64,000 nt of DNA, from positions 13,516,001 to 13,580,000 of the forward strand of contig OZ281497.1 in NCBI GenBank assembly GCA_965637545.1, in the 5' to 3' direction. The DNA is from Phallusia mammillata. Taxonomy: Eukaryota. This document shows, one piece after another, positions 5,097 through 52,076 of the stretch. How positions within the stretch are numbered: position 1 is the first letter of the stretch; each line of letters opens with the position of its first letter. The position numbers and the translations under genes were made by a program. The notes beneath the pieces were generated by a model. It searched no databases, was not told the DNA's origin, and saw only the letters and a list, made by a program, of their open reading frames with translations.

Positions 5097-6624
5097 TTAT
5101 TTTCGTACAGGAAGAAGATCCGACAGAAGTTTCGATGGGCAGCATTGGTCGACCCGCACCACAGCACATGGAAAGTCGTAATCCATCAGCCAATTGTAGA
5201 GGTAGGTGTCTTCCATGTCATCCAAGTCTGGAGTGTTGAGCCTTGAATTCTCCTTTTCCTAAAATACATCGGGTAATAGCTCGGCTTCAATATCTTTCAC
5301 GCTTTTGTTTCATACCAGCTCGATCCCTGCATAAACCCTTGCTTGACCTGGCGTCTTGTGTTTAACTCTTTCAAGTACCCGAACCGTACCTTGAAAAGGT
5401 TTTCCTTTTTTGTTGAAAACACAAATCTAGAAAGAGACGTTGGCGTATTTTGCTTTTGTGGCTTCTAAAATACTTTCTGCTATGATTTTACCTTCATCCC
5501 TTTTTTAATTCCTTGTGAGCTTTTCATGGTTGGCGTATCGGGTACAGCGTCGTCATCAGCCTCGTCATCTGAAGAGTCCTCATCGTCATCTGAATCACTC
5601 AGAGATGACGTCATGTCCGATTCAGCTGTGCTTGTGTCGTCAGCAGGTGTAAATTCGTCTAGACTTGAACTTTCCTGTACAAGGCAAAAATCCCAACCAC
5701 TCTGATCTTTGATTATATAATTTAAATTATCATTAGCTTACACTCGTTTCACTGTCGGATTCTGCAGATTCAGTATCATCATCTTCACTGTCCGACTCAA
5801 CTTTTCGCTTTGTCATCCGTTTATTGTCGTTTCTATCCTTTGTCTTTCCAGCTTTCACAGCCTTCTGTACCACTTTTGATAAACCAGCAGTGGCAGGTTT
5901 GCTGGCTTTTTGTTGGGTTTTAACAGGTTTTTCACTTTTAGTAGGCCTACTCTTCGCAGGTGCATCCTGTTATTACAAAATCGGAAAAATCAATTTAAAG
6001 GCAATATTGAATCACAAACTTCACTTGACTCGTGTTTATACCATTCTCAGAAGCATTAATATGCAACTTTCAAAAGGCGAAAAAAATCATTTTAGTCCTA
6101 TCATAGCCTAGCCTATTATTTGACAGCAGCATCTTTGTTTTCTGACTTTTGGCTAAATGCGGGCGCATCTTGCAAGTCATGGACTGTGTAACTGTAAAAG
6201 GTTATTTTATAAATTTTACGTCGTTGTGAAATGTGTTGCCTACCTAATTTACATGAACAACATCGAAAGTTTTACCTACTTTATGGTCCTTCAACATTTG
6301 CATCAATCCAAGAATAACATAGTTGCTGGGAATGTCGTTTACACCTTTCTTTGTTAATGTGGTGGATTTACGACACACAGCACATTTCACTGAACGCTTT
6401 CCCATTGCACCCGCTTTTAAACACCCTGCAAAACGAGATTAAAGCGGATTAAATACAAGACTAGGCCTATGCTATGATTATCTTTATACTTTACCTTTCA
6501 GACAGCGGCAGCAAAATGAATGTTGGCATTTTAACACTTTAGGCTCTACGTATTGCGAGCAGCAGATTGGACAAGTAAGTAGATCTTCTCGAAGTTTACT
6601 TTGCAGGACACTTCCGGATGCCAT
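5097..6624 (-). CDS. 318-aa RING-HC finger protein with Lys-rich/acidic linker and C-terminal degenerate CAP-Gly-like domain
   Basis: Six exons with canonical GT-AG and matching phases: 6624-6495, 6425-6280, 5966-5742, 5674-5492, 5426-5316, 5258-5097 (957 nt). N-terminus LTCPICCSQYVEPKVLKCQHSFCCRCLKGC...VKCAVCRK is a TRIM-like C3HC4 RING. C-terminus GMKICVFNKKGKPFQGTVRVL...VYAGIEL. Not shown in the ORF track because exons are short. Confidence 0.85.
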
Positions 6625-40498: not shown

Positions 40499-42803
40499 CT
40501 ACAAGTATTGCAAGCCAGGTATACTGAAACCCCTAGCAAAAGCAGTGACCTCATTTTTAATCTCTGTTATTTTTTGTTGCACTCCTGGATCACCATACAA
40601 TTTTGTCTTAAAATCCTTAAAAGTTGCCTTGGGTGACAGAGATGATTGAATTTCAACTGTTAATTGAACGCCCCTGCAAACACATCTCAACATTAAAAAA
40701 CATGACCCTATTTAACCTGCTTAAAAAGGTACTTATACAGTGCTTGGTGCAATGTTTGAAGGTAAACACAACTATGTAGGTGGGGGTGGGCCAATTTAAC
40801 GACCAATAAGATTCTGGTTAGGTGCCATGACAATATTTATCAATGACAAACAACTGTATGAACACCACTTAACTGTTCAAAGAAAATACTCAAGCTATTG
40901 TCAATATTGTGTCCCATCATGACTCAACCTTTACACCCATGTAACAATATGCAAACAATACAGACTAATCTAAAATTAAGTCATCATCATACCTGTCAAC
41001 AAACTCAGCCACCTTTTGGAAATCATTTTCGTTTAAGCCTCTTGAAGTCAATGCAGGCGAGCCTAGTCGCAAACCACTTGGACGCAAAGCTGATTTGTCA
41101 CCTGGACAAGTGTTCTTGTTGCAAGCCACACCAATTAGCTCAAGAACTTTGTCAGTACGATTTCCATCTGTTCCCTATAATGTTTCAATGTAATGTTTAA
41201 TTAAAGTATAAAGTAAACTTAGCCTACACTTACCTGGCTTGTCAGGTTTACAAGAATAAGATGAGTATCAGTGCCACCAGAAACAACAGTATAGCCCATT
41301 TTGGTAAGTGATTTGGCAAGCTCTTGCGAATTTCGGATAACCTGAAGACTTACACTGTTTATATGTAATACAATATCAATAAACATCAAAATATGTAATT
41401 CCTAACCCGCTTTTGATATTCAACAAACTGAGGTGTTGCAGCTTGATGTAAAGCTACTGCAACACCAGCAATTGCATGATTATGTGGCCCACCCTGCAGA
41501 CCAGGAAACACAGCTTCATTTATTGGCTTTTCCAGATTGTACATTACAGCAGGCTTTGTTTGTGTTGCTGGAAATCTAACACCTCGGCGATAGAATATAA
41601 TTCCTGCCCGTGGACCCCTAATCCAAAATGTGTTTGATTGAATGACTTTTCATTACGTTTTACCATAAAATACCTCAATGTTTTATGAGTGGTACTTGTC
41701 ACAATGTCACAGTGTTCGAATGGTGATGGAATAACTCCAGCAGCAACTAGCCCACTAACATGAGCCATGTCTGCCATTAAATATGCTTGGTTTTCTGAAG
41801 CAATTTCTCTGAATTTTCTGTCGAAAAGATTATTCCTGTTTCAGCTTTAGCTGTTTAAATGGGTTATCAAGTTTTCACATTTTTACGTAGTTTCTTGTCT
41901 TCAAAAATTTATCGCACAAGAGACTTACTTATAATCCAGAAGACGGGGATAGCAGCTCATTCCTGCTATAATCATTTTTGGTTTAAATAATTTGGCATTG
42001 TTTGCAAGTTGCTCATAATCAATTAAACCTGTTTCTGGATTAACCTTTGATGCAAAAACAATAAAGATTTACAAAAAACTAAAATGCAGATGGGAACTGA
42101 ATAATTCAGTTTAACCTAGTTATTTTATGGGTAATTTGAGTGGACAAATTAAATTGTTGCATAATAGTATTTGGCATACACACTTTATATGGCATGGATT
42201 CAAAAAATATAGAAGTGGCAGAGATTTTCTTTTTCTCTGTCATAAACCCATGAGTCAAATGTCCTCCGTCAGGTAAATCCAATCCCATAATCCGTCCATG
42301 TGGCTCAACAATTGCTAAGGATAAAAGCATAACCTTGTTAAATTGTGTCAAAAACAGTAAACAAGTTTACATACCAGTATATACAGCAAAATTTCCTGGT
42401 GAACCAGAATATGGCTGCACATTTACACCCCATTCTTCTGGTGACAACTTATACAGACTCAGTGCTCTTTTTTGACAAAGTCTTTCTAATTCATCAATGT
42501 TTTCTGTACCACCATAGTATCTGTCATATTGCAAAACATGTTGCTTTGTTTGTATTCAAAAATGTTAAACCATTCCACAAACCTTACGCCTGGATAGCCT
42601 TCCGAATACTTGTTGTTCAAACATGAACCAAGTGCTTGCAGAACGGCGGCACTTGCAAAATTTTCTGAGGCGATTAATTCCAGTCCGTCCCTTTGGCGCT
42701 CCTTTTCATTTCGAATAATTCTGTAAATATCAGGGTCATTTTCTTTAAGCGACTCCTCCAGCCAGTTTGAACCGCCATTACAAGTAAAATCGCCTGAAGC
42801 CAT
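40499..42803 (-). CDS. SHMT1: Serine hydroxymethyltransferase, cytosolic type
   Basis: Multi-exon. [48 protein letters not shown]-lysine motif [48 protein letters not shown]; ends FSIPGLQYL*. No ATG-initiated mitochondrial presequence seen. Confidence 0.95.
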
Positions 42804-42940
42804 GGTCCTTTCTTCCAATGCAGCAACAACACACCAACCACGTGCCACAGATACCGCTGAATGGAACGATAACGTCAAATTTCCTATTTATATATGGCAA
42901 CATGAAATCAATCATGCAGAACGATCAAAACATTGCTTTT

Positions 42941-42952
42941 TTTGGCGGGAAA
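42941..42952. promoter_or_regulatory. Consensus E2F site in the SHMT1-TERT spacer
   Basis: TTTGGCGGGAAA exact match; minus-strand TATATAAA at 42894-42887 upstream of SHMT1. Confidence 0.55.
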
Positions 42953-43176
42953 CTGCAACTGCAACTTGCGCAGCAGTTTAAGAGCATCAGGTGTTATCTT
43001 CTTCTGCTTTTCTAATTACAATTAGTTAATATTAATACGTGCTATTAAAAAAAATCCAGATGCTCTGTAACAAATTCCCGTGATGGTGATGTATCGGCTA
43101 TCGGGGATTGGTTGATCACTCTTCCCTATTTTTCTATTCAATTTGATGTTGGATATAACATGCACTTACTTGAAAA

Positions 43177-46100
43177 ATGTGCAATCAAGAGTCTCAAAAT
43201 CTTAGTTTGTGGTCTCTACGATATTCTTCCAATTGTGCAGTTAAATCTCACCCCTTTACATGTAGTCACTTGCTGCAATATTTATCATCAAGTCAAACCT
43301 CCGCCAGAAAAATGGTCAGAGAAATATTTCATCAGCAATCAGCAAAAGACACTTACAAACGATTGGTAGTAAGAAGAATAAACTTAAAGAAAAGTTTACA
43401 GAATCAGAAAAAAACCAAAGAAACATCAGAGTTTATGAAAACATTTGGATTTCTGCACAGAGATTTTCAGGAACAAGAAAGAACACTTATTTGCCAAACA
43501 AAAGTTAGTGTTCCAAGGTCATCACGCAAAGCCATTAAATTGTGCAAGATTATCTTAAAACAATCAAAGAAAAAATATTACTATCCATTGCTTAACATCT
43601 ACTGTCCACTGGTATTGCCAAACAATTTTTCAGATGATATTATTGCCCAAAAGTCAACTCAAGAATTGGTTGAAGAAAATGCAAGATATTTGGAAATGGA
43701 TACCTCTAAAACGGAGGTTTGTCAATAAAGATTTATTATTGTTGTCAACTGTCAGCTGATAGGTGTTAGCAAGGAGTATTAACAATTCTTTTTTAGGTGT
43801 TTTTATTCCTACGTGCTGTCATAAGAAGAATCCTACCAATGAAGGAAACATGGGGTTGCGGTAAAAATGAATCTTTGTTTTTAAAACACATTAAAAGCTT
43901 ACTGACCATGCGTGCATATGACAAAATTAGTGTTGAAGAAATGGTTGATGGCTTAATAACAAAAGACATTCCGTGGGTTTCAAGTGAGATTTTTTTAGCA
44001 TACAAAACTTACTTGCAATTTTATACAAAAAAAAAGAAAAAAAAAGATTCCAACGAAGCAAGTACTAAACCCTAAAAGATCTTTTAAAAATTATGCTTTG
44101 TATTTTAGATGGCCATAGATTGAAAATGCTCAAAACCTTTGTTTTCTGGTTTTTGAAAGATGTTCTATATGTCATCATCAGGCATTTCTTTTATATAACT
44201 GAACATTCATGCTTCAGAAATAGGAAAGTGTTGAATGTTATAATTTAATCTTATATTCATTATTGAATGATGCTCGTATTTCTCAGTTCAACATATAATA
44301 CTAGTAAAAGTAAATAAAAATAAAAATTTAATGATGCTATTATTTAGGCTGGTGTTTTATCGCAAAGAACTCTGGAAGAGTATTGTACGAAATGGTGTCA
44401 CAATTTTGCTCAACAATAAAATTTGGGGTTATAATTTAAGTACAAACAAAGAAGGAGCTTGTTTTCGGTGCAGATTTTGTCCTAAATCATCCAGTATTCG
44501 ACCTATCATATATTTACCAGTGGCAAAAATGACAGACAAGCCAGCAGGTGTAAGTAAAAACCATTTTAGCAGAACACCTTTACATTGCAGCTGTGGGCTG
44601 CATTTTTTTCAGGCAACAGTGTTTTACAATACAGTTCTACAATTTATTTAAATACAACTGCAATAACAAAGCACAAAAGCAGACCACTAACCACTTTTAT
44701 AACCTTGCTTAGAAAATGGAAGCAACTATAGTTTTGAAGATTTTGCAACACATATGCAAGAAATGTCCATGGTTAATAGGTTGTGCTGCACAAGGAATAA
44801 AAGAAATTCATCTTAAGTGGAATAAGTTTGTAACAGCTTCACAATCTACTGCACATGATTTAAAATTGTTCTTTGTAAAGGTGTGTAAGTATTTATGGTT
44901 TCCCTTGTCTATTTCAAGTGGATATTATTAAACTTGAAGGAAATTGGACAGTACGCTTCACCGTTGTTGTTTTTATTCGATATTTTGACCCTTTTTTGTC
45001 AATCCCAATTTTCATTAAAAATGGGACGATATATTCTAGTGTATTTTTCGCGCTGGTCTCCCAAGGTTTGGTGATGGTTGTTCACAGGCTAAATTTTTGT
45101 CTGTACTTACAAATGTTTGGAACCAAAGCCTTCATTCCATAGTTATATATGTGTGTAGTGTTTGAAACCTAACCCCTCTTGCAGGTTGATGCTGATCGTT
45201 GTTTTGACAGAATACCTGTTGACAAGTTATTGGAAGTTTTGAAGTTAATTTTGCAAAAGTATGTGTTTGAAGTATATTCAATCATGTTTGAAGTATGCTT
45301 TATTGTTTTATGTTGCATTTACTTTGTAGAGCTGGAAGCACAAAAGTATCACACTTATCTCCGGTAAGATTTTTTATAGTGTGTGTGAAATTAAACTTCA
45401 CAATAGAAGTGCATTAGTATACATTGCAAATCAATAAATGAAATGTAAACCAGTACTAAATATTTACATCACTTCTACATTGAGGGTTTATTAAAATGGT
45501 AAAAAGTCCTCCCCCCTAACCTTTGATCAAACAATAGATGTTTAGTATCATTGGTTTGCCATTAAAAATTATGTATTCAAACTTTTGTTTTTAGACTTAC
45601 AGAAAAGTTTTTGATTGCTCAGAGGAAATTTTACTCTTTGTACAAAAATCTCTTGAGAATGTTTCTATAACTTGCATGGGCAAGGTGATTTTCACAATAA
45701 ACTATGAAAATTGTTTTCTTCATAAGCTTACTTATTCGTTTTAGAAATATGCAAAATTAGAAGGAATACCCCAAGGGTGGTGTTTATCAAAAATTTTATG
45801 TGACATTCTTTATGGTGACATGGAAATCAAGTATTTTCCAAGTTTAGCATCAGGAACATCATCTGGTGTGTTTGTTTTTTTGGTTTTAATCAACAAAAGT
45901 TAACAGCAAATACATTAATTTGATTTGTCAGATCTTCTTGTACGCTTTGCTGATGACTTTTTGTTTGTTAGTTCAAACCAGCTGAATGCTGAGAATTTTT
46001 TAAGGTATGACCTATATAAGTACTTTTAGGTATACATAAAAGAAAATCAGAGAAATAAGTCAAATAGTTACATTTGACATAAGTGAAAGTTAGAATCGAA

Positions 46101-49100
46101 TTCTGTAATGACAAAATAGCATCAATGCACCTTTTTAAGTGCTCAAAAACTACTTAGTTGCTGTACTAATACCTACAATGCAAATTAATATTCCACTAAG
46201 CATATTCAATTTTTATTTGTCATGTAGTGTTATGAGTTCAGTTGAGAAGTTAATTCTCCCTGTATGATGACAGTTTTAGACTGCAATGATTGTAATTTAA
46301 CATTTTTTTGCCAAAACTGACCTTGATGTTAAATTGTGATCGTGACCAAGCTGATCTTGTTTGAGTTCCATCATAGTGTAGTTTTGTGCTGCACACTTTG
46401 CAGACATGTAGAGAAAACTATGAATTGTTATGTACAGTGTTATTTTATGCAGGTTATTTTGTGCAGTTTAATTGTGCAAATCTATTTGCAGAACGATGCA
46501 CAATGGATTTCCTGAGTATGGATGTTTCATAAATGCAAGAAAAAGTCAAACAAATTTCCTTGTTTCTACAAACCTATTTATCAATTGTGAGTTCCTGGTG
46601 TGAATTGTTCTCAACTGGATCTGATAAAAAATATAACGCTTATTGGTTATAAGCAGGGTTGCCATACCGTCCTTATTTCTAAGATTTGTCCTTATTTTTG
46701 ACTTGAGTCCTTCTTTTATCTTATTTTTAACCATTACTAGTCAAATCTGTGCTACCTGAGCTGTTGTGAGATGCACGAAGTATTTTCTACGAACAAGGAG
46801 TAGCTACAAAAAGATTGTTTCTGGCCAAAATATTGCATATGATATGTCATGGCTCTTGTAAATGCAAAGATTTGTTCAAAAACGTTGGTTTTGTTTCGTA
46901 TGAAAATTTAAGTTTTCAGTTGGTCCTTATTTTTGGTTTCAAGTCGATGGCAACCCTGGTTATAAGTGAGATAAACCCACAAGCAACCAATACAAACAGT
47001 TTAAGCTTGAATTTCATCCAGGTGAAAAGATTACAGAGCAGCAGCAAGCATCTCCCTTTCCATGGTTTGGTTTGCTTTTTCCAACGTGTCTGCCTCCGTC
47101 ATTTAAAGATGGAAAAATTTCTGGAGGTAAAACATCTCTTTTAAACTGATATTCAAGAACCTTAAAAAGTTGGTTGTAACAAAATTGACTGTACATGCAA
47201 CGTTGGGAGGTGAAAGTTTTTTCTTCGAGATGAAGAAGATGGTAAAAAAGCAAATTGAACCATAAAACCTACCTTATCCATAGTTTTGTTTAACAACAAA
47301 AGTAATGAAGTATGTCGTACATAAGACACAGAGTAGATTACTAAAAACAAATTTGCCAGTAAATCATAAACATTCGACTGCGTAATACAATGTCGAACGT
47401 CGATAATATAATGTCGAACGTCGATTTTTTTTATTTTACCACGCAAATGAATGTCTACGATTTGTTCTTCTATATCACTGGCATTTTTGTTTTTAAAAAA
47501 ATCTCACAAATCGGTTTTAGGAAAAGTTTCAGGTGAAAAACTTAACAAGAGTTACGGTTTAATTTTTTTCACGTGTAGACGAATTCTTTTTTTGCGGCTT
47601 GACGCAGCTGAAAACGTTTAAATTGGTGTACAAATTTTTTAGGATCAAAGTTATATGGTGTTTCGCTGGATCTCTCCCGTTACAAGGAAATAGGTTCGAT
47701 ACGAGATTGCATCACAGTCGGCAGTACTATTCCCTGCAGTATTGTTTCTACAACGCTGAAAAGGAACCTGAGACTTCGTCTTCTGCCCATCTGTTTTGAT
47801 CCCGAGGTAAAATATATGGCATAATACTAAAGATAATATTGAACGTAGAAGAACTTTTCTGAAATTGTATTACAGTCAAACTTCGATACTATGCCACCTT
47901 GCTATTATGCCACCCTCGCTACTATACCATTTTTGATCGTCACCAACTAAATTCAATAGAAAATATCTTTACTATGTCACCCCTTACCCTTGATGCTATG
48001 ACACATGAGAGTACAGTATTACTGTATTAACGGTCTGGTTATGGATGGAAAAAGTGGGCCTTCTGATAACTTTCGGTTTGAGCTCATGATAAAACAGAGA
48101 AAACACGAAAAACAAATCGTTGAATAAACAAACGTAGTCAAGTTTCACAGCTTTGCAGCGAGTTATGTAAACGCCGTTCTGTGCTTGTGTAATAAAAATA
48201 ATTTATTTTGTAATAAATTATACTGTATACTGTAATAAATTATAATCGTACAACCCAACGTGGCATTACAGTACATTGTCACGTCACAAGGCTATGTTTA
48301 AAAACAACCCTCGCTATATGCCACTTTCTCTCGGTCCCAAAGCCCACGAAAGGTTGAGAACCACTGGTTTAGGAGTTATAACAACCAAAATACATATTAT
48401 TTTGTTAGGACCGAATTACCGTTGTAAATTAATTCGGTCAAACGGAATAACGAAAAAAATAATTTGCACAGAACGAATAACGTTATTTCGTTTTGTTCCG
48501 TTCCTTTATGAAACACTGCTTAAAACTGTGCATCAAGTTAGACATCAGTCTGTACTACGATGGTTAATTTATAACTAAAACACGTGGAGGCAGTGGCGGC
48601 TGTTAGTAAAATAATCACCTGTGATGTGGCCGTCGATTACGACAATGTTGTGCAACCATGATTCTAAACCCGACGACAAGTATGTTTGAACGGTGTTCGG
48701 GTTTTGGGATACCATAATCCCATGCTTTGTTTAAACAAGATTTAACTGCTATAACAGACACGACCCAACAATATTATCCTCAAAATTATAAGTTTACAAT
48801 GTGCTATTTAGATGCCGTTAAAAATATGAACTGTTTGTGTTTATTTGAAGATTAACACCACACTTCGAATACTCCGCAATATCTACGAAGTTGCCTTGGT
48901 TATTGCATCACAATGGATTGCGCATGACCTCAATCGTTTTCCGCGTCGACGACTTGCACGTAGACGTACAGAAGCTCTGTTCGGAATTGAATTGTTGGCA
49001 AAAGCGGCATTTTCCAGAATCCGAAAACAGTTTCCTGGTATTTTTGCAGCATTGGTTCCCAACCGTTTACTAAATGCGTACCATTTGTCAACTTTCACTG

Positions 49101-50153
49101 TGTCGGCGTACCACCTATAATCTTATTCATTAGCAACGGGAACTTTTCTTGATTAGGTTAGCGTATTTTTGAAACCACCAATATACTGTTATTTTTAAAG
49201 CAAAGTCCGAGGCACCTACTTTCCCCAATTCTTATCAATTAAAACGTAATATAACCTGAAAACTTCGTTAATGTGATTTACACACACAGCAAATGCCATA
49301 AACGCGTTTATGCCAAAATAGTACGCTATAAAGAGGTAGAGAAAGTGTTTTTTTTCTAGCTCAATAGTTGTTTGTTGCAATTCTTGATCTGACTTCAATA
49401 GACAACGCCTTAATGCGTTTTAATTATGTTAATTATGAGTCCGCTGTTCATGCGACTGTCCCATTACCAGTCCGTGGATCATACTGCCGTTTGGCATTAT
49501 CAATGGCCATGACACATCACTTGTGCTAAGCTGCAGTTGTAACATGATACTTATTACTTCATTTCAATATATGTTGCAGCAAAATTTCCTTCCCGTCAAG
49601 TTGTGCTTTGGATATTCTACAAAGCATTCAGCACAAAACTGAAGAGAAGATTGAATCAATACAAATCTATTGTGTTTCATTTGTCTTCAGGTATTAAATT
49701 AGCTCTAGATTGTTTTATTCATATACTGTATACCAGTGGTACTAAATACAGCATGATACCACACATGACTGCATGTTATCACAAGGTTGAAAGTTGTAAA
49801 GGACTTTGGAATATGGTTTTGTAAAAATTATAGTTTTGCAGACTTTTGAAATCGCTGACGATTAGAACTATTCGGGTTGGGTGAGAGTTTGTAATTGAAA
49901 TAGTAGTAGAATCTGGTCTAATTTACCCTTGTTGGGGCCTGTACTCTCACATTTCACTCACCATGCAGTATTCCAAGCGGTTTTATGCGGTAACATGTGC
50001 TATTTAGTACCACCCCTGTAAATACCTAATCTTGTTGGACGTTTAGTGATGCAGCACCAACTGTATAAAACACACCATCCCCAAATGCAACGCTTGCTCA
50101 AGCATTCAACTGCAGTATTTCCAGATGGTCTCAAACATATGTCTATGAAATAA
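43177..50153 (+). CDS. TERT: Telomerase reverse transcriptase, ~790 aa, 16 coding exons, no TEN domain
   Basis: Exons 43177-43716, 43797-43983, 44109-44223, 44348-44549, 44713-44880, 45185-45258, 45330-45363, 45595-45684, 45745-45865, 45932-46004, 46492-46586, 47022-47126, 47643-47806, 48851-49037, 49580-49690, 50047-50153 (2373 nt). Motifs: CP LLNIYCPL; QFP FLRAVIRRILP..WG; T FFYITE; 1/2 CRFCPKSSSIRPI; A FFVKVDADRCFDRIP; B' GIPQGWCLS; C LVRFADDFLFV; D GFPEYGCFIN; E FPWFGL; CTE RNIYEV and LWIFYKAFSTKL. Exact start codon uncertain. Confidence 0.92.
46654..46958. mobile_element. hAT-type MITE, 305 bp, in TERT intron 11
   Basis: TIR CAGGGTTGCCAT / ATGGCAACCCTG; perfect TSD GTTATAAG; internal GTCCTTATTT repeats. 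Confidence 0.92.
47873..48028. mobile_element. Possible Tc1/mariner-type MITE remnant in TERT intron 13
   Basis: TA|CAGTCAAAC start and ...TACTG|TA end, with CTATGCCACC-like subrepeats; TIR match is short. Confidence 0.35.
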
Positions 50154-50718: not shown

Positions 50719-51954
50719 CTAGTAAACATTAGCTAAACCTGCAGATTTTCTTGCTTTTTGAATTACTGCTCGCAACATAAATTGTTGACGTGATAATGCT
50801 CGCACATGCTTTAAAAATGTGTCAACATCTACAACATCCTTATGAAGTGCCTCACTTAGATAGTAGATGGTATCCTCAAGTGCTTGCTCCTCTGCAAATG
50901 ATGTGACAATTTGCCTGTATACAGGAGTTGTAGCCATCACAACATCATCCACATCAAGGTTATCCTGTTTTTGCTGCAATTTATCAATTTCGCTGGTCAA
51001 TTCATCATTTCTTTGCTGCAACATAATTCTATTTGCATCTGCATCATTGATTTCCAATTCGAGCCGCTTAAGTATTCCATCAATCTTTTCCTGTCCAACC
51101 TTTAATTCGGATTCAGTCTTTCGCAAAGCCTGTGTTTCACTTTCTGCTTGTGCAAGAGTATCCTTTAGCCTTCTCTTCAACTTTTCATTAACTGCTGACA
51201 AAAGTGATGCTTTAATCATGCTGTCTTCAATTTTTGTATCCTTTGACTGCTGCATACCAGCTTGTGACTGTGGAGGATATGCTGTTGGGATAACGCTCAT
51301 CTGATTCGGCTGTGGATAGCCACTATATGGTGGGTACCCAGTTCCAGTTGGTGATGGATATGGTGGTTGCTGAGTAGTTGTTGTGGGGTAGGGTGTTGGT
51401 GCCCGATAGTTTGTGGTTGGTGGACCCTGAGGAGGAAAGGCTTGACCAGGATAAGGGGTTCTCTGTTGTGCAGGATATGGTTGGGCCTGTGGGGGTGGTG
51501 GTCGACCTGGAGCTGGTTTTGCAAATACTGGAGGTTCTTCACTAAAAACTGCTGCCATCACTTGCACACAACCAACTAAATTGTGGCTTCTGGGGCGCCA
51601 GTCAGTTAAATATGGCAAGTAGATTCTTCCATTTGAGTCAACATGCTTTCCTTGTCGCACCTGCATTGTGCTGGTTGGCTGCACAAAACATAGGGGTGGA
51701 ACTTGTGGATGGGCTTCTTGTAGCCAAAGTGCCACAGGTATGTTGTAGGTTGTTCCCTTGTAAACTACTGGTATAGTACCTTTTAGACAGACCAAGTTTT
51801 TGCTTGAACCATCATTAAAAATAAATCTTTCAATAGATGGCTTTAGATCTTTGTAATGACTGATAAGGTTCAATGCATCCTGCCTTGCTGCATCCGGCTG
51901 GTTGTATTTACCTTGCATTTGAGACCTAAGATAAGCCTCCATAGGATGTGGCAT
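50719..51954 (-). CDS. TSG101: Tumor susceptibility gene 101 (ESCRT-I), single coding exon, 411 aa
   Basis: Uninterrupted ORF: UEV domain (LKGTIPVVYKGTTYNIPVALWL...HVDSNGRIYLPYLTDW), Pro/Tyr-rich region, coiled coil, steadiness box (FAEEQALEDTIYYLSEAL...FLKHVRALSRQQF). Putative 5'UTR intron 53440-51975. Confidence 0.96.
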   Translation of the reverse strand: MPHPMEAYLRSQMQGKYNQPDAARQDALNLISHYKDLKPSIERFIFNDGSSKNLVCLKGTIPVVYKGTTYNIPVALWLQEAHPQVPPLCFVQPTSTMQVRQGKHVDSNGRIYLPYLTDWRPRSHNLVGCVQVMAAVFSEEPPVFAKPAPGRPPPPQAQPYPAQQRTPYPGQAFPPQGPPTTNYRAPTPYPTTTTQQPPYPSPTGTGYPPYSGYPQPNQMSVIPTAYPPQSQAGMQQSKDTKIEDSMIKASLLSAVNEKLKRRLKDTLAQAESETQALRKTESELKVGQEKIDGILKRLELEINDADANRIMLQQRNDELTSEIDKLQQKQDNLDVDDVVMATTPVYRQIVTSFAEEQALEDTIYYLSEALHKDVVDVDTFLKHVRALSRQQFMLRAVIQKARKSAGLANVY

Positions 51955-52076
51955 TTTTAAGCTGTTTGAACAACCTGTAATCAAAATAAAGTTAACCTTA
52001 ATTCATACCTTTTTTCAGCCAAGCATACAATTTTTTTAAAGATGAAAAAACATGTGCACCCAAATTTCATTCAAAA

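Follow-up and report, generated by a model that had tools for sequence, protein, structure and literature searches.

The telomerase reverse transcriptases (TERTs) of the insects Tribolium and Spodoptera have neither the TEN domain nor the TRAP motif, and TEN-less TERTs have been listed for nematodes and arthropods, with tunicates unmentioned (PMC11892584; PMC12920920). Spodoptera telomerase is processive in cells, and accessory proteins have been proposed for it (PMC11892584; PMC12920920). It is reported to catalyse without a TEN domain, with a low intrinsic processivity that cofactors raise (PMC11892584). Among tunicates, the TERT of Ciona has been described as lacking the TEN domain's GQ motif (Li, Yates and Chen, Gene 2007), at least according to the passage on it in Lai 2017 (PMC5405514). 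Here we describe the TERT gene of the ascidian Phallusia mammillata, which lies in a window of 64,000 bp (positions 13516001–13580000 of contig C4, OZ281497.1, in the 240-Mb assembly GCA_965637545.1); coordinates given below without a contig name are those of the window. An earlier note on this DNA, made from the letters alone, had proposed a TERT that begins at the TRBD, with no TEN domain and a shortened IFD, and had remarked that the N-terminal loss by itself might not be new. That remark was correct, as GQ loss had been published for Ciona, to judge from the same passage (Li 2007 via Lai 2017).

The question is of some general interest because human telomerase is considered to require the TEN domain and TRAP for repeat-addition processivity and TPP1-mediated recruitment. 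No living group is closer to vertebrates than the tunicates, whose telomere repeat is likewise TTAGGG, and the sole TERT of Phallusia is without TEN and without TRAP. Phallusia belongs to the same ascidian group as Ciona, and the TRAP motif was defined only after 2007. Our literature search found no paper on Phallusia TERT and no report of TRAP loss in a tunicate.

Results

Our results indicate that P. mammillata has a single-copy, expressed TERT that very probably consists of the TERT ring only (TRBD, reverse transcriptase (RT) and C-terminal extension (CTE)), without TEN domain or linker and with the TRAP motif lost, and that this architecture is a tunicate trait. The structural part of the earlier note (start at the TRBD, no TEN or linker, truncated IFD, intact active site) stands; its suggestion of a TEN domain supplied in trans found no support.

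The gene has 16 exons, with a coding sequence at 43177–50153 on the plus strand that encodes 790 aa. The translation of exon 1 is 100% identical to residues 1–179 of UniProt A0A6F9DTZ8, with the same initial methionine (phmmer, 1.84 billion representative proteins). This cDNA-derived entry is a 790-aa ‘Telomerase reverse transcriptase’ of Phallusia mammillata, from which the protein encoded in the window differs by 3 residues over the full length. The gene is also transcribed: the contigs of 14 RNA runs contain about 30% of the words sampled from a 7.9-kb TERT stretch, which is the share expected of a spliced mRNA. RNA-derived contigs from one run of each of four studies were placed on 42300–48299, and identical GT..AG joints link exons 1–13 in all four (intron 3, with non-canonical ends, is taken up below). 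For exons 14–16, the start at 48851 is a match to a loose contig end behind 47806 and the rest was set by GT-AG sites; those at 49037/49580 and 49690/50047 give the UniProt C-terminus exactly. The Pfam family Telomerase_RBD matches two plus-strand open reading frames (ORFs), 43797–44072 and 44069–44245, with E-values of 1.2e-12 (exon 2) and 1.5e-7 (exon 3). As this locus is the sole Telomerase_RBD match in the 240 Mb, there is no second TERT gene.

Only 13 residues precede the first TRBD motif of the protein, a TFLY/CP2-like motif at residues 14–51 (43216–43329), in line with the observation of the earlier note that the ORF reaches a TRBD-like motif within about 15 residues. There is no TEN domain with its GQ motif and no linker. 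The motif was placed by an alignment of five tunicate sequences, in which Y16, L33, L36, S39, S42, A43, R44, V47, I50 and F51 are invariant, and by its match to human TERT 333–366, which we take to be the TFLY/CP2 motif that opens the human TRBD. The same alignment places the CP motif region at residues 112–145 (43510–43611), with R114, R117, K118, C123, L127, K131, L138, C143 and P144 invariant; the Takifugu TRBD (4lmo) aligns from residue 112. When a profile of the five N-termini was searched against 177,635 distinct PDB sequences, the top three matches were human TERT and the Takifugu TRBD came next. Profile positions 26–59 align to human TERT 333–366, followed by a collinear stretch to human 405–471. 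The N-terminal 170 aa of Phallusia alone gave only chance matches against the PDB in phmmer. Both motifs lie in the coding part of exon 1 (43177–43714, residues 1–179), whose extent is fixed by the contigs and the UniProt entry. The QFP motif is in exon 2 (43795–43983) and the T motif in exon 3 (44109–44220), both within the Pfam matches and confirmed by contigs. The T, QFP and CP motifs of the TRBD are thus all present by Pfam, by the alignment to human TERT 450–735 and by the Takifugu TRBD.

Between the TFLY-like and CP motifs we observed a further short motif, F-(L/M)-x-x-F-G, which occurs once in Phallusia (aa 85–91), twice in Clavelina (about aa 186–192 and 223–229) and twice in one other tunicate. 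We know of no human counterpart.

The second reduction is in the IFD. Phallusia TERT matches the human PDB chain with 193 bits and an E-value of 8e-56 (HMMER) in two blocks, residues 170–429 with human 450–735 and residues 464–750 with human 817–1093. The gap between the blocks is 34 aa in Phallusia versus 81 aa in human. Counted from the motif A aspartate to the motif B′ glutamine, the spacer is 74 aa (D406–Q480) versus 121 aa in human (D712–Q833); the earlier note, which had put these at about 60 and 110, had the direction and the size of the difference right. Both flanking helices of the IFD are kept and about 47 residues are absent at the position of the human TRAP segment, so that this is not the canonical IFD with TRAP.

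The exons across this region were assigned from the contigs and the human TERT alignment. Exon 4 (44345–44549) holds the end of the T motif and motifs 1–2, and exon 5 (44713–44878) runs from the motif 3 region to the start of motif A. Motif A with D406 (45188–45190) and the first IFD helix are in exon 6 (45183–45258), and exon 7, of only 33 nt (45330–45362), lies within the short stretch that replaces the human TRAP segment. The last IFD helix follows in exon 8 (45594–45682) and motif B′ with Q480 (45772–45774) in exon 9 (45743–45864). Each of the four RNA runs, like the UniProt protein, follows the same path through exons 6-7-8-9. Thus, the additional IFD exons that the earlier note had named as evidence that would tell against it were not found.

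The rest of the catalytic protein is complete. Motif C with D518/D519 (45952–45957) is in exon 10 (45931–46002), motif D in exon 11 (46490–46586) and motif E in exon 12 (47022–47124), again by contigs and human alignment. All the catalytic aspartates are therefore intact (D406 in motif A, D518 and D519 in motif C), as had been claimed. Motifs 1, 2, A, B′, C, D and E are all present, with alignments to human TERT for B′, D and E. The CTE (thumb) begins in exon 13 (47641–47806; contigs, human alignment) and continues through exon 14 (48851–49037; loose contig end, UniProt protein), exon 15 (49580–49690) and exon 16 with the stop codon (50047–50153), the last two set by GT-AG sites and the UniProt protein. 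Its presence is indicated by the alignment of residues 464–750 to human 817–1093 and by a structural superposition that reaches residue 779–790.

If TEN exons had been missed, they would have to be spliced into exon 1 downstream of its upstream stop codon, from an alternative promoter or in a tissue-specific isoform. We consider this highly improbable. It is favoured by the fact that assembled contigs drop rare isoforms, and an alternative joint, 43859–44108, shows that minor isoforms of this gene exist. However, the TERT contigs of the four studies start at 42964, 42976, 42996 and 43047, that is, 130–213 nt before the ATG, and define a 5′ untranslated region (UTR) at 42964–43176. Taken together, the four studies cover 42964 to 43714 without a break, with no joint or listed loose end on the 5′ side, and none of the contigs placed on 42300–48299 joins an upstream exon to TERT. 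An in-frame TGA stands at 43171–43173, two codons before the ATG at 43177, so no extension of the ORF is possible inside exon 1. Upstream, the SHMT gene starts about 100 bp away on the opposite strand, and the earlier note had reasoned that the 373 bp between it and TERT leave too little room for a TEN domain; counted from ATG to ATG (SHMT minus, TERT plus strand), the figure is exact. An equivalent start is seen in the UniProt entry, which derives from cDNA, and in the NCBI model of Clavelina, and there is no TEN-like match anywhere on the TERT chromosome. The earlier note had also said that TEN-coding exons from beyond SHMT spliced into TERT would count against it; no such exons were found, the contigs ending 5′ at 42964–43047.

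The alternative joint itself (43859 to 44108, GT..AG) was seen in run X1 only. With it, exon 2 loses 124 nt at its 3′ end and the reading frame changes; this isoform is probably minor and non-productive. The 5′ UTR contains five upstream ATGs (43060, 43083, 43089, 43146 and 43160), and the one at 43160 opens a 69-codon ORF that overlaps the TERT start in another frame. These upstream ATGs may restrain TERT translation.

Other tunicates show the same architecture. We compared the Clavelina lepadiformis TERT models XP_076812032 and CAK8676013 and the exon 1 ORFs of other tunicate assemblies. The start at the TRBD is common to Clavelina and three further assemblies, and the first methionine lies 14–47 residues before the TFLY-like motif in every tunicate sequence. 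One Clavelina model has 80 extra Cys/His-rich residues, which look like a fused neighbouring exon and not a TEN domain. The Clavelina spacer from the aspartate to the glutamine is 74 aa, the same as in Phallusia, and the IFD exons of a third tunicate locus correspond to these. In two of the tunicate loci outside Clavelina, exon 1 is followed by a Telomerase_RBD exon. A word-index search for homologues returned only Phallusia TERT itself, Clavelina TERT and one microsporidian TERT. Because Clavelina has this architecture, three assemblies have the same start and GQ loss is published for Ciona, the TEN-less TERT is a trait of the tunicate lineage. By parsimony, the loss is independent of those in insects and nematodes, because vertebrates and a sea urchin keep the TEN domain.

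The predicted fold points the same way. The ESM Atlas holds a model of the exact Phallusia sequence (pTM 0.72), whose best neighbours are arthropod TERT clusters of 709–740 aa (TM 0.72/0.76). Its superposition on arthropod TERTs has 647 aligned residues across query positions 14–779, and a language-model feature search placed an arthropod TERT cluster first, above a chordate cluster of 1045 aa. As the superposition runs from end to end, the whole predicted protein would correspond to a TEN-less TERT ring.

Could a TEN-like module be encoded by a separate gene and be supplied in trans, as a natural split telomerase? The idea has a precedent in that the TERT ring can be served by a human TEN domain acting in trans (Robart and Collins 2011, from the reference list of PMC11892584). 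A six-frame search of the genome with the Pfam TEN_TERT model (PF11474) gave one candidate, at C6:9796486–9796707, just above the cut-off (25.3–26.1 bits versus 25; genome-wide E 0.0013). It lies within an open frame of 362 codons that is present in the contigs of one study (P6), and run X17 of that study carried spliced TERT. On the other side, the candidate belongs to a clustered family: four paralogues lie within 90 kb, giving five copies at C6:9795772–9881109, and further copies are found at C1:33230187–33553486, with a protein kinase C-lobe exon ahead of at least two of them. Only 1 of 7 family members matches TEN_TERT and 2 of 7 match TPR families. The AlphaFold model of the candidate (pLDDT 81.6) has 13 helices and no strand, and the best Foldseek matches in the PDB are the TPR proteins sNASP, KLC (kinesin light chain) and LGN; TERT is absent from the matches. 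The ORF has no homologue in the word-indexed protein database.

From the paralogues, Pfam, AlphaFold and Foldseek, we rejected this candidate as a chance match from an all-helical, TPR-like, lineage-specific family. The genome held no other TEN_TERT candidate even at E <= 10; this negative is weak, as the model was unchecked against animal TEN domains and a diverged TEN could escape it. The Pfam model may be centred on ciliates. The only result of the genome-wide search being a false positive, a TEN domain in trans has no support here, and we think it very unlikely.

The telomeres of Phallusia are of the kind that telomerase would produce. The genome matches (TTAGGG)6 at 6,457 overlapping places and a reversed control pattern nowhere, and the chromosome-scale contigs carry kilobases of the repeat at their ends. 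At the end of contig C1 there are at least 3.3 kb of TTAGGG, with the strand running 5′ to 3′ into the end, and C4, the TERT-bearing contig, starts with about 1.5 kb of CCCTAA. We infer that Phallusia TERT makes these arrays, working like the minimal insect telomerases. For shelterin, the POT1 OB model (PF02765) gave two collinear sub-threshold exon matches at C4:9988783–9989590 on the minus strand, with typical N-terminal POT1 sequence. By its sequence, this is a probable POT1 gene, about 3.6 Mb from TERT on the same chromosome. The TPP1 (PF10341) and POT1PC (PF16686) models had no match in the genome, a negative that is uninformative as the exon-by-exon search had no positive control.

Some points weigh against our interpretation. 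By itself, the match of the N-terminal profile to human TERT is weak (E 0.13); the TFLY assignment is sound despite this, because of the rank of the matches and their collinearity. An AlphaFold2 model of the TERT built on a 7-row alignment was poor (pLDDT 39.4, pTM 0.29). Because that model is unusable, our statement on structure is drawn from the Atlas model and the sequence alignments. Transcript contigs are assemblies and are unable to fix the cap site. Finally, the vertebrate telomerase RNA model RF00024 had no match in the genome, a result that is uninformative in itself.

The absence of a telomerase RNA match would also fit a TERT relic with a non-telomeric role, with the telomeres kept by another mechanism, which we regard as extremely improbable. 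Homology searches for telomerase RNA have failed generally, in every tunicate genome examined (PMC8704543). Against a relic, all RT motifs and the three catalytic aspartates are intact, the gene is spliced and present in the RNA contigs of several studies, and conservation of the TRBD motifs extends to five tunicate sequences. In addition, the long, near-perfect TTAGGG arrays at chromosome ends are the product expected of telomerase.

Several other features of the locus deserve mention. Intron 3 (44224–44347) has non-canonical GA..AG ends according to the contigs and the UniProt protein. In the contig record, the piece 44109–44220 is followed directly by 44345–44549, and the UniProt protein, from cDNA, continues through the exon 3–4 junction. 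The cut is ambiguous over 4 nt, within which GA-AG is the sole choice with an AG acceptor and there is no GT-AG or GC-AG option. In introns 11–13 (46646–46965, 47871–47917 and 48100–48299), many unrelated high-depth contigs with loose ends pile up and behave like transcribed interspersed repeats.

On the 5′ side, the first exon of SHMT (42583–42864, minus strand, ATG 42803) was identified by Pfam SHMT at 42486–42878 and by contigs. The SHMT contigs end at 42833–42864, which leaves about 100 bp to where the TERT transcripts begin, and the two genes are divergent; at this spacing they may well share one bidirectional promoter. SHMT lies upstream of TERT in a second tunicate assembly (L017) too, but there on the same strand. 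On the 3′ side, Pfam identifies a TSG101-like gene (UEV and Vps23 core, 421 aa) as a single uninterrupted ORF at 50719–51984 on the minus strand, convergent with TERT at a stop-to-stop distance of 565 bp. Given the intron-rich genome, this single-exon ORF may be a retrogene.

Discussion

It is already known that the TEN domain with its GQ motif is lost in Ciona, and the Phallusia protein is in UniProt under its correct name. What we add is a TERT model, backed by transcripts, for a second ascidian genus, a start at the TRBD that Clavelina and three tunicate assemblies share with it, and the co-loss of TRAP in a chordate, with identical spacing in Clavelina; the last is a modest addition. To these come the match of the predicted structure to arthropod TERTs from end to end and the kilobase TTAGGG chromosome ends. 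The sole candidate for a TEN domain in trans has been rejected, in a search whose negative is weak.

If the ring is all there is of this TERT, repeat-addition processivity and telomere recruitment would come from a source other than the TEN-TRAP-TPP1 interface, most likely from accessory proteins. The earlier note had held that recruitment and processivity must work differently in Phallusia, and this is a reasonable inference. More specifically, we propose tentatively, and think it rather unlikely in this form, that ascidians have replaced TEN-TRAP-TPP1 with a different trans-acting processivity or recruitment factor, yet build kilobase TTAGGG telomeres. Such a replacement factor could be a free-standing TEN domain too diverged for the Pfam model, or it could act via the tunicate-specific F-x-x-x-F-G motifs between TFLY and CP. 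Ascidian eggs and embryos are workable material for asking what replaces TEN-TRAP.

How does the Phallusia enzyme compare with known telomerases? The TERTs of Ciona intestinalis and C. savignyi are close to it, having like Phallusia no GQ motif while keeping the TRBD and RT motifs, as far as the passage cited above describes them; Phallusia represents a different genus and has a shorter protein (790 aa). With human and other vertebrate TERTs, Phallusia TERT shares a collinear TRBD, RT and CTE, the same catalytic residues and the same TTAGGG repeat. In contrast, the first ~320 residues of human TERT (TEN and linker) have no Phallusia counterpart, and the ~47 IFD residues absent in Phallusia are where human TRAP contacts TEN and TPP1 (PMC11892584).

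There is also a close likeness in architecture to the TERTs of Tribolium castaneum and Spodoptera frugiperda, which are the TERT ring only, with no TEN and no TRAP; Phallusia has what defines such a TEN-less minimal TERT, namely the ring alone, a start at the TRBD and no TRAP. There are differences as well. Introns are numerous in the Phallusia gene but absent from lepidopteran TERT genes (PMC11892584), and where arthropod telomeres have TTAGG, those of Phallusia have TTAGGG. In the tunicate protein, a TFLY/CP2-like motif has been retained, in alignment with human 333–366, and by parsimony its loss of TEN is an independent, chordate one. Thus, ascidians offer the chordate counterpart of the insect minimal telomerases.

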